A DNA stretch of 64,000 bases from contig NW_020846447.1 in assembly GCF_003704095.1 (NCBI RefSeq), positions 1 through 64,000 of the forward strand. Direction: 5' to 3'. Source of the stretch: Pocillopora damicornis (lineage: Eukaryota). The notes beneath the pieces are model-generated. The model saw only the letters and a list, made by a program, of their open reading frames with translations, was not told the origin of the DNA and did no database searches. How positions within the stretch are numbered: position 1 is the first letter of the stretch; the number at the start of each line of letters is the position of its first letter. This document shows positions 9,819 to 63,754 of this stretch, one piece after another. A program made the position numbers and the translations under genes.

Positions 9819-12800
9819 TTATCTTGTATTTACCTGTAAAAGAAGATTTCAGAAATTAATTCTTGCTCTGGTTTTTCCAATTTTATACTGCAACGTGTAT
9901 TGTGGCCAGATTTTGGTCGGAGTTCATCTTACTGTGAGGAAGGGATGGTGGAATTAAAAGCTTAAACCTGTGAAAAGCTAAATCAAAAGTTTGGTAATCC
10001 TGTTTTAAACACACTGACCCTAATCTTTAACTTCTGCCATAAAAAATAGCTGTCATTGTATATTGCTGTTTCTAACGCTCCTTGTTACTCTCACTTAACC
10101 TCCGTCATTATGAAACCAGTGGGAAAAATATCCCGGTTGCGTGCGGTCTGCTTAGAATACCTTGTATAACTTGAGGCCGTTAAATTTACCAATGATAGTT
10201 ATTTATACTTACAATGTCATCGATCTTCAGAATGCTACGAACTGTCTCGGATGCCAACTGAATGGCACTGGTTGACACGAGAAGCGGCTGCAGAACGTTC
10301 TCTTCTAGAATATTAGTAATTGTGCCCTGAAAAACAAAGATATGAACAAAAATGAAATATGAAAAAAGAAAACTGAATAAAACTCTGCCGACAAATAGAA
10401 AAAAAAAACGCCATACGAGTGAAACTGCCCGTAGCACACGGCGTTGAGGTTAACAAGTCAATTTCCCAAGAAAATGTTATGAAACAATGTATCTCGCTGT
10501 GCTCAACTTACATTTCTTAAAGATGCCGGGCACAATTCAAAAACCAAACGCCAAAAGGCCAAACATGATAGAAAACGTCAAGCTATTTAAAGAACTATTG
10601 GAGTTGGACAAAGTATAACAAGAATAACAGACTTCTATATGTAACTGTTGTGGAGTAAAAACGGTCCACAAAATAAACATTTGAACACTTGAATAGAATT
10701 TCCAGGATCTCACCTTCCTGACGTTTATTCCTGCGGTAGTTTCGCCCTTTGCATGCCTGTTCCTTAGCTCCGTGACTGTAGCAATAGGATTCAGACCAGC
10801 ATTCTCGGAGAGTGTGTAAGGGATAACTTCCAACGCCTCTGCAAATGCACGGACACAATACGCCTCCATTCCTGTCAACGTGCGCGCATGTTCAGCCAGC
10901 TTGATGGACACTTCGATCTCTGGAGCTCCGCCTCCCGCTATGAGAGCTCTGTTGATATCAAGAATCAGAATGAATTAAATCAACTAATAAAATGAATAAG
11001 AAATGAACCGGTTGAAGAACAAATATGAAAAATGACTCTGTCCCTGTTAATCTAGTACGAAGTGTGTGAGTAACATGCTACGCCTATAAACCTTCTACCA
11101 TACATATAATCATAGCCAACGTTGAAAAAAAGGAATTCTGTCAGAAATCTTCATATATACCTCTTACTACCCTCGCTTTCTTGGCCCGTACTGTAAGTCA
11201 CAGACCGAGTTATTTCCGCTCGGATTTACGGCCCAAGCGCAAGGTTCCGTAATTTAAAGTACAGACCGAGAAAACAAGATTAGTAAGAGGTATGTACGAA
11301 GATTTCTGATAGAAATCTCTTTTTTTTTTATAACGTTGACAATTATTATATATATTTTAGAAGATTTATAAGCATACTGTGTTAGTCACACTTACAGTTG
11401 CATAACTAAGACTCCGGCTAATGAAGGGGAAGATCTCAATTTAAACAAACTTTGAATTTATGGGGCAGTACAGTGAAATTCGGCCCGTTAAACCAATAGA
11501 AACAAGCTCGAAGTATAAAGGAAGTATCAGAGTAAAGAAAAATGTTTAGCAATCATAACAAGCTTGAGAAAAAGGCTTTGGTACTTGCATATCCACACTC
11601 TTCCTCCTTTTGAGTCAATGTTTATGGACATTTTTCCTCCCCTACCACCTTCAAGGGAAATGATCTTCCACTAAGATATCGTTTTCATGATTCACAAGTT
11701 ACCTCTTCTTAACCAAGCATCTCACAACACAAAGAGCATCATGAAGTGATCGCTCAGCCTCTTCCAAGACAAGCTTGTTGGATCCTCTCACCAATATGCT
11801 GACAGTTCGACCAGGATTGGTAACCCCTGTCACCTTGACTACTTTGCTGGTACCCAGGGGTACTTCCTCCACAAGCTCTGCAGTTGCCAACATCTCTGGA
11901 GTGAAGTGATCCAAACTGGCAATTGGTTTACATCCTAAGCTCTGAAATCAAGAAGATAACAAATTTACTGCATTCATCTCGACGCAAAGTTCTGGTAGTG
12001 ACAACCTAAAATTGTTGTTTAAATCACGACTGACTCAAATCAAGATTAATATCAATCTACTTATAAGTTCTAAACACTTTCAGAAAAAAAAACCAGCTTA
12101 CAGTTTATTTTCAGCCGTTTTCCCTCCAATTAAGATTCAACTCTATATAACGTTACAACAAATATACGCTTTCACACAAGAATCTTGAGACAAAAATGTG
12201 CACCACCTTTCCAATAACCTCTACAAACTTCAAAATGGAGTTCTTTGGCTGCATCTTTCTACTATTTGTGACTATTTTCCCCTGGATTGCTTGAATAAAT
12301 TCCTTAGCCCCACAAGGTTCACTTACCTTGCATATGAATTCTATTTCATCTCTCTCTATGTCCCTAACAACAAGAATCTTCATTTTGTTCAAGAAATGGA
12401 GGGCTAAGTCACTGACAGCATCTCTGTAAAACAGAAAACAGCAGAGAATATTAACAGAGAAAGATAAAAACCTCGCAAAAATTTAAACTTGTGCCTTCCC
12501 AGCCTGGTCCTAAAATAACAACCCAATCAACAAGACTACAAATAAACACAAAAGCTGAAAAATGTGCACAACATACCTTAGAATAGATTTTTGGATGAGC
12601 AGAACATTACATCCTGCCTTTTTTATTTTCTTGCAGATATCAAGGATGTACTGACGTTCCTCGCGTAGCACCCTGTCCATCTGTGTGTAGTCACTAACTA
12701 TTACTTGATTTTCCATCTGATAGGAAAACAATTCATAGTCTGGTCAATTAACCCTTTACACCTTAACATCAGTATGCATATTCTCCATACTGTTCTCTAT

Positions 12801-63200: not shown

Positions 63201-63754
63201 GATAGCTGTTGAGGGTTTTAGAGACCTAACATCAGCATGAGGTTACAAACATAAGAGCTCTGGGTTGTTAAGCTAAAGACTGCAATTTTTTGTTATTCTA
63301 CACTAATTAGAATATACACTGTTGGTTTTTTTTTTTTTTTTTTTTTTTTTTTTTTTTTTTTTTTTTTCTTGTTGTTATTTCACAAAATGGTTTGAACAAA
63401 ATAAATTTGTAATGATCAATTTTAGAAGGAGGAACAGTTGGTCTGTGGAGCATGACATCCTTAAACTCATTCCTTTTATGCTATTATTGTAGACTCTGCT
63501 ACGTTTTCTCAACTGGATTCCCCTTGGTTACATATTTGAGACACAGCTGAACAGCACTCTTGTTTGCAAGGTATGCTGGGAAATAACCCATAACAACACA
63601 ATTAATTTTTTTTGTTCCCTCTTAATACTTGGATTGCTAAGTTTATTATGTTTGATGTGAAAAGTACAGACTAAAGCAGAAGTTCCTTCTAATTTGCAGT
63701 TTCTGAATGTACCCATGTTCCGAAATGTGACTCTGAAGTGTCTGACTGAAATTG
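60261..63754 (+). CDS. XPO1: Exportin-1 (CRM1), 5' part; exons 60261-60380, 60474-60575, 60648-60720, 60852-60913, 61041-61085, 61657-61772, 62299-62413, 62701-62742, 63493-63570, 63700-63754; continues beyond the window
   Basis: [100 protein letters not shown]. Confidence 0.97.
62811..63079. mobile_element. Non-autonomous DNA transposon (TCCTGGAAA repeats) with an apparent 6-bp TSD, in an XPO1 intron
   Basis: CAAGGTTTG...CGAATCCTG ends; ATTACA at 62805-62810 and 63080-63085. Confidence 0.78.

Follow-up and report, generated by a model that had tools for sequence, protein, structure and literature searches.

A compact CCT4-SGPP-COQ6-COMMD1 neighbourhood in the coral Pocillopora damicornis and its probable relation to human 2p15, 14q23-q24 and 1q32

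Is the close packing of CCT4, SGPP, COQ6 and COMMD1 at one end of a coral scaffold an accident of a compact genome, or the remnant of a gene neighbourhood inherited from ancestral animals? We addressed this question for a stretch of 64,000 nucleotides from Pocillopora damicornis (contig NW_020846447.1 of assembly GCF_003704095.1), hereafter the window, which comprises bases 1-64000 of a 303,599-bp scaffold in an assembly of 234.35 Mb and 4393 contigs; the scaffold starts at window position 1, with no sequence further to the left. The arrangement of the four-gene core is real and, by a rough estimate, lies far beyond chance, and the locus is probably what is left of an ancestral neighbourhood that was split in vertebrates by duplication and reciprocal loss. 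A wider interleaving that includes a second half of the window, with a ZNF410-like gene and XPO1, is plausible. All searches were run exon by exon via stop-free stretches, without joined (spliced) protein models.

The four-gene core and its counterparts in other animals

In the window, the core and the space between COQ6 and COMMD1 take the following form:

About 10189-17005, minus strand: CCT4 (TCP-1 delta), many exons with Cpn60_TCP1 matches, start codon at 17005, last exon 10189-10449
20881-24888, plus strand: SGPP (sphingosine-1-phosphate phosphatase), at least three exons, weak PAP2 match
28447-33810, minus strand: COQ6, about 12 exons, start codon at 33810
33811-33921, no strand: 111-bp spacer between the start codons of COQ6 and COMMD1, a putative shared bidirectional promoter
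33922-35070, plus strand: COMMD1, two coding exons (33922-34381 and 34970-35070), transcript reaching at least 35200

A first-pass annotation had called these four genes along with the ZNF410-like gene, XPO1 and a SERTA-like gene; six of the seven calls were borne out, the SERTA-like gene being the one that failed. For CCT4, the best match among solved structures was TCP-1 delta, with 130 bits as against 65 or fewer for the other CCT subunits. SGPP has its nearest named Atlas clusters in SGPP2-like (0.97) and SGPP1 (0.95), and it matches the PAP2 genes adjacent to COMMD1 in Acropora, Rhopilema, Paramuricea and Glandiceps with E values of 1e-34 to 1e-54. Eight exons of COQ6 run collinear with positions 1-433 of the COQ6 equivalog model TIGR01989, which outscored the general UbiH family model in seven of them, and nine introns of the gene, with CT..AC ends, were seen in contigs of poly-A RNA from four studies. 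The idea of some other monooxygenase for the FAD_binding_3 gene next to COMMD1 was considered and rejected, the exons of this gene matching COQ6 in order in every species. COMMD1 displays a COMMD1_N match of 3.6e-42 together with a COMM domain, and its single GT..AG intron (34381/34970) was seen in four RNA runs; among its 133 relatives, those bearing names are COMMD1.

Two repeated elements were also observed in the COQ6 region. Dozens of contigs carry, at 91-95% identity, a 57-bp element that lies in a COQ6 intron (33279-33335), and a short element at about 30431-30495 (within 30285-30678) is common, at very high depth, to many unrelated RNA contigs.

Gene order was compared among cnidarians and bilaterians with COMMD1 relatives as anchors, neighbours being read up to 10 kb to either side and their identity checked by exon-by-exon tblastn with the window peptides. 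The orders were as follows:

Acropora, stony coral: PAP2(+), COQ6(-), COMMD1(+), ARMT1-like(-)
Actinia, sea anemone: COQ6(-), COMMD1(+), ARMT1-like(-)
Paramuricea, octocoral: CCT(-), PAP2(-), COQ6(-), COMMD1(+), ARMT1-like(-), GNAT(+); 16 kb
Rhopilema, jellyfish: COMMD1(+), PAP2(-)
Patiria, sea star: COQ6(-), COMMD1(+)
Glandiceps, hemichordate: CCT(+), COQ6(-), COMMD1(+), PAP2(+); 25 kb
Heptranchias, shark: CCT(-), COMMD1(+)

The COQ6 neighbours were confirmed in each species by 8-11 exons in order, SGPP was confirmed likewise, and the end exons of CCT4 match the COQ6-adjacent CCT genes of Paramuricea and Glandiceps at 78-87% identity. In the window the four genes span 25 kb, the same as in Glandiceps. 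Since the core is common to anthozoans and ambulacrarians, it is at least as old as the cnidarian-bilaterian ancestor and was later lost in several lines; the pre-bilaterian age that had been proposed for the whole locus holds for these four genes.

The pair COQ6(-)/COMMD1(+) has kept its orientation in all six species that have it, with start codons 86-318 bp apart and every spacer bounded by CAT and ATG. Adjacent in Cnidaria (four anthozoans), Echinodermata (Patiria) and Hemichordata (Glandiceps), the two genes qualify as a conserved pair. RNA contigs from the coral reach 33811 on the COQ6 side and begin at 33908 on the COMMD1 side, which places the 5' ends within about 100 bp of each other, these contigs giving neither transcription start sites nor expression levels.

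The rest of the scaffold and three human regions

Further along the scaffold lie the following features, the last three of them beyond the window:

39552-39935, plus strand: open reading frame (ORF) of 127 codons, earlier called SERTA-like, relatives 58-100% identical
54593-57938, minus strand: ZNF410-like gene, five exons and seven C2H2 fingers, from C2H2 matches
60261-64000, plus strand: 5' part of XPO1 (exportin-1), N-terminal exon read directly, gene continuing to about 71 kb of the scaffold
89,640-92,709, minus strand: INTS7
About 95.8-99.6 kb, plus strand: DTL, adjoining INTS7 head to head
117,966-120,181, plus strand: FAM161

The last five fingers of the ZNF410-like gene align in order with the DNA-binding domain of human ZNF410 (PDB 6wmi) at 162 and 159 bits, residues 91-182 of exon A corresponding to 6wmi 4-95 and residues 11-68 of exon B to 6wmi 93-150. 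Its vertebrate matches of highest identity (58-65%) are named ZNF410, as against 35-45% for generic zinc-finger proteins. The word search for ZNF410 covered proteins of 0.55-1.75 times the query length, a range that excludes full-length invertebrate ZNF410; an exhaustive protein search that started from the zinc-finger exon gave no usable anchors, since everything it retrieved was a long multi-finger protein, and the summed scores of such proteins swamp the true relatives. A single match in Nematostella stood on a 7.5-kb contig without neighbouring genes. XPO1, a later exon of which matches exportin-1 at 8e-65, is head to head with the ZNF410-like gene, their start codons lying about 2.3 kb apart.

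Beyond the window, DTL matches the human denticleless protein at 9e-42, and a genome scan with PF10595 (FAM161A_B) revealed the gene at 117,966-120,181 as the sole FAM161 locus. The linkage of FAM161 that had been predicted is there, on the same scaffold, though 54 kb past the window rather than just outside it. ZNF410-like/XPO1, INTS7/DTL and FAM161 all fall within about 120 kb of one coral scaffold.

In human, SGPP1 lies at 14q23 and SERTAD2 at 2p14. The published order is USP34, XPO1, FAM161A, CCT4, COMMD1, B3GNT2 at 2p15 (PMC5426703) and PTGR2, ZNF410, FAM161B, COQ6, abutting one another, at 14q24.3 (PMC5845532), in agreement with the orders quoted in the first-pass annotation, and on 1q32 a distance of 35 bp separates INTS7 from DTL (PMC12083599). 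INTS7/DTL adds this third human region to the picture. The two genes stand side by side in the coral as they do in human, and in Pecten and Lingula INTS7 is paired head to head with COMMD1.

A history that would connect these arrangements runs as follows. Judging from the distribution among species, the core would have been in place in the cnidarian-bilaterian ancestor, and two vertebrate genome duplications would have been followed by different gene losses in each duplicate. One duplicate would have retained XPO1-FAM161A-CCT4-COMMD1 (2p15), another ZNF410-FAM161B-COQ6 with SGPP1 farther along (14q23-q24), and a third INTS7-DTL (1q32). The vertebrate CCT4(-)/COMMD1(+) adjacency would then be CCT4(-) SGPP COQ6(-) COMMD1(+) minus SGPP and COQ6, a derivation by reciprocal loss that had been put forward before. 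It is partly upheld: the CCT(-)/COMMD1(+) order of the shark fits, while the human FAM161B(-)/COQ6(+) order does not follow directly from the model and needs an extra inversion.

The SERTA-like gene fared differently. The ORF at 39552-39935 fails every sequence test: it has no Pfam match at E up to 5, SERTA (PF06031) included, and none of 11 relatives matches Pfam SERTA at E up to 10. The relatives carry no Pfam domain, and the sole named one is 'hypothetical protein pdam_00013446 [Pocillopora damicornis]'. A PF06031 scan of the genome gave two good matches, canonical SERTA genes both on contig C1921; a profile of the ORF's own family found only the ORF and one paralogue and did not reach that contig. 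An Atlas language-model feature search ranks SERTA-bearing clusters first for the ORF (0.90, 196 shared features), which serves as a lead only. On sequence grounds, orthology to SERTAD2 is not supported, and the SERTAD part of the proposed interleaving should be dropped. The paralogue lies beyond XPO1 at scaffold 77415-77903 on the minus strand, and the two have a common core K-R-K-R-(D/E)-P-D-M ... A-V-L-E.

ENTPD5 and USP34 had also been expected next to the block. No GDA1_CD39 or DUF3517 match was found on the scaffold; both families match contig C803, which might adjoin the block, because USP34 and ENTPD5 flank the two human clusters. On this contig, a DUF3517 match of the USP34/USP9X/USP24 type at about 67 kb and ENTPD-family matches at 102-121 kb are 35-55 kb apart.

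Two further genes of the window, both absent from the first-pass annotation, are these:

2468-8117, minus strand: TRAF-like gene, RING exon 7920-8117, MATH/TRAF-C exon 2468-3421
17168-18016, plus strand: small gene of two exons, a model predicted from ORFs

The TRAF-like gene matches TRAF-mep_MATH at 1.9e-44, and the structures of TRAF1, 2, 3, 4 and 5 score too much alike (each about 1e-32 to 1e-37) to tell the subtype. The small gene is in head-to-head orientation to CCT4, 163-214 bp separating the two start codons, and gave no Pfam match at E up to 5; its second exon displays a Cys-x-x-Cys motif preceding a hydrophobic stretch. A Pfam scan of the ORFs at 40-54.5 kb revealed no recognisable coding domain, and an Rfam scan of the whole window at the gathering score, which does not see unmodelled small nucleolar RNAs (for example in the CCT4 introns at 14611-15460), returned nothing.

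Outside the window, a single-exon ORF of 327 codons at scaffold 110,953-111,933 shows a full-length ROK match (sugar kinase/repressor type, 2.3e-37); a gene of the ROK family is unusual in an animal genome. A tandem array of more than 10 genes occupies scaffold 146-193 kb and 285-294 kb, its members pairing, as judged by eye, a BTB/potassium-channel-tetramerisation-like N-terminal exon with a conserved C-terminal exon.

Alternative explanations of the linkage

Besides the extra inversion, several points weigh against an ancestral neighbourhood divided by duplication and loss. Within 10 kb of COMMD1, neither COQ6 nor CCT4 was found in Branchiostoma belcheri, where the neighbours are DUF2039 and HAUS1, in the scallop Pecten and in Lingula, which have INTS7(-)/COMMD1(+) instead, or in Hydractinia, where the neighbour is DCP1. 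Retention is lineage-specific, with the neighbourhood disrupted in the amphioxus, the scallop, Lingula and Hydractinia. The order and orientation of CCT4 and SGPP vary between coral, octocoral and hemichordate, and no short words common to the six COQ6/COMMD1 spacers were found. The linkage of ZNF410/XPO1, INTS7/DTL and FAM161 rests on one coral scaffold together with the human positions, the species compared are all cnidarians or bilaterians, with no sponge, placozoan or ctenophore among them, and the sequence is probably not continuous at an assembly gap between the two halves of the window, treated below. Dispersal of the genes in amphioxus had been named beforehand as evidence that would speak against the block; such dispersal was found, at the 10-kb scale and in one lineage, and the hemichordate and the sea star outweigh it.

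Of the other explanations, the one that survives best holds that the neighbourhood is old and real and was kept passively, by slow rearrangement and with no shared regulation. The block has been lost in several lineages without obvious harm, the orientation of CCT4 and SGPP is variable, and a search of the COQ6/COMMD1 spacer found no conserved motif, all of which speaks for passive retention, as does the high micro-synteny retention in Saccoglossus given in the text of PMC4729200. Against it, the orientation of COQ6/COMMD1 and a spacer below 320 bp have held over three phyla while the flanking genes move, and conserved ancestral pairs are, according to the main text of PMC3514665, enriched for 5'-5' orientation and very short spacers. 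We regard passive retention of the whole as somewhat unlikely. The COQ6/COMMD1 pairing may have been kept since breaking so short a shared promoter region would harm both genes. The other genes are linked less tightly, and here the probable cause is passive retention in genomes that rearrange slowly, for example those of anthozoans and hemichordates. The shared promoter remains putative, because no motif was found in common among the six spacers; with a spacer this short in three phyla, the choice between promoter sharing and mere slow rearrangement can be put to a direct test.

A further step would make the bidirectional promoter of vertebrate CCT4/COMMD1 a direct descendant of the pre-bilaterian COQ6/COMMD1 promoter, CCT4 having taken over the divergent position of COQ6 once COQ6 and SGPP had disappeared from one duplicate. 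We hold this to be unlikely. Were it true, a single divergent promoter, inherited without interruption, would have driven COMMD1 all the way from the cnidarian-bilaterian ancestor to vertebrates, with a changed partner.

Very unlikely, in our judgement, is that the genes share only an ancestral linkage group, that is, chromosome-scale synteny, and came close together by chance in a compact, gene-dense scaffold. Many other genes of the scaffold do resemble, by domain, genes with human relatives on 14q, 2p or 1q (glutaredoxin-5-like, sphingolipid desaturase, FHA and G-patch genes), and the coral gene order is unlike the human one: it shows no collinearity with the merged human order, FAM161 lying 45 kb past XPO1 and not between XPO1 and CCT4. 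A linkage group does not account for four unrelated genes within 16-25 kb in octocoral and hemichordate, or for the head-to-head pair that is also present in the sea star. The chance that three given genes of a 34-Mb chromosome all lie no more than 25 kb from COMMD1 is roughly (50 kb / 34 Mb) cubed, about 3e-9, an estimate and not the outcome of a permutation.

The last alternative concerns the assembly, and two features bear on it:

35257-35356, no strand: assembly gap between COMMD1 and the GNAT gene, just beyond the COMMD1 transcript
36064-38207, plus strand: GNAT acetyltransferase gene with a C-terminal polyproline tract, weak GNAT matches, absent from the first-pass annotation

Three runs of N occur in the window (1035-1134, 35257-35356 and 36600-36772), of which the latter two break none of the genes annotated earlier. 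In Acropora, Actinia and Paramuricea, an ARMT1-like gene (-) stands at the place matching the gap 35257-35356. The ARMT1-like protein of Acropora found nothing in this assembly, and PF01937 gave only one weak match, on contig C1035. Because the gene of these three anthozoans was not found, the sequence is probably discontinuous at the gap, and a gene may be missing there. That the interleaving of CCT4-COMMD1 with ZNF410-XPO1 is a scaffolding artefact at this gap, 100 N that divide the two halves, is nevertheless very unlikely, as the GNAT gene just after it also follows COMMD1, after ARMT1, in Paramuricea, and the relatives that COMMD1, the 39552 ORF and the ZNF410-like gene have in a second coral each show a longest contig of 611,747 bp, probably one and the same.

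Three exons of the GNAT gene match the co-positioned Acetyltransf_1 gene of Paramuricea. It may be NAA80-like, the Drosophila NAA80 structure (5wjd) giving only E 0.18. The gap 36600-36772 falls inside its first intron; for one Paramuricea exon (L012 14042-14242) the sole candidate counterpart, at 36956-37120, is doubtful, and the expected exon may lie in the gap.

Relation to known systems

A literature search returned no paper naming this block, and none relevant on COQ6/COMMD1 microsynteny or a CCT4-COMMD1 bidirectional promoter. The block is apparently an undescribed example of a well-known phenomenon, conserved ancestral microsynteny with reciprocal loss after duplication, and it leaves the general picture unchanged, because hundreds of such blocks are already known.

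The closest comparison for COQ6/COMMD1 is with the conserved ancestral microsyntenic pairs that Irimia et al. (2012) described across metazoans, for example HSPE1-HSPD1 (PMC3514665), among which the 5'-5' orientation and very short spacers are over-represented. As in those pairs, unrelated genes are adjacent across phyla, mostly 5'-5' and at very short distance. COQ6/COMMD1 differs in being unnamed in the main text of that paper and in being split onto two paralogous chromosomes in humans, because of which a human-anchored survey would miss it.

The core as a whole can be set beside the micro-synteny blocks of Simakov et al. (2015), defined as at least three genes with at most 10 intervening; in the text of that work, hemichordates share blocks with other metazoans, and vertebrates lost micro-synteny by genome duplication and differential paralogue loss (PMC4729200). 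CCT4-COQ6-COMMD1-SGPP falls within this working definition in the window, in Paramuricea and in Glandiceps. The block is not described in the text of PMC4729200, and here the loss is traceable gene by gene into three human regions.

Genomic regulatory blocks, in which a developmental gene and its bystanders are held together by long-range enhancers, resemble the locus in the long-lived linkage of unrelated genes. They differ from it in that housekeeping genes make up the locus here, with a spacer of promoter scale as the tightest link; neither a developmental target gene nor conserved non-coding elements came to light, no dedicated test having been made.

Finally, the locus can be compared with the paralogons left by the two rounds of vertebrate genome duplication (2R). 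The human set 2p/14q/1q32 also includes 19q. FAM161A and FAM161B flank two of the human clusters; in the coral, the single FAM161 locus shares its scaffold with the block. Such paralogons usually consist of retained duplicates over megabases, whereas mainly single-copy genes, kept on different duplicates, are concerned here, and about 120 kb of pre-duplication sequence. Single-copy housekeeping genes are what surveys anchored on human order or on retained duplicates tend to miss, and the locus would offer a compact worked example of one ancestral neighbourhood divided among vertebrate duplicate chromosomes by reciprocal gene loss.

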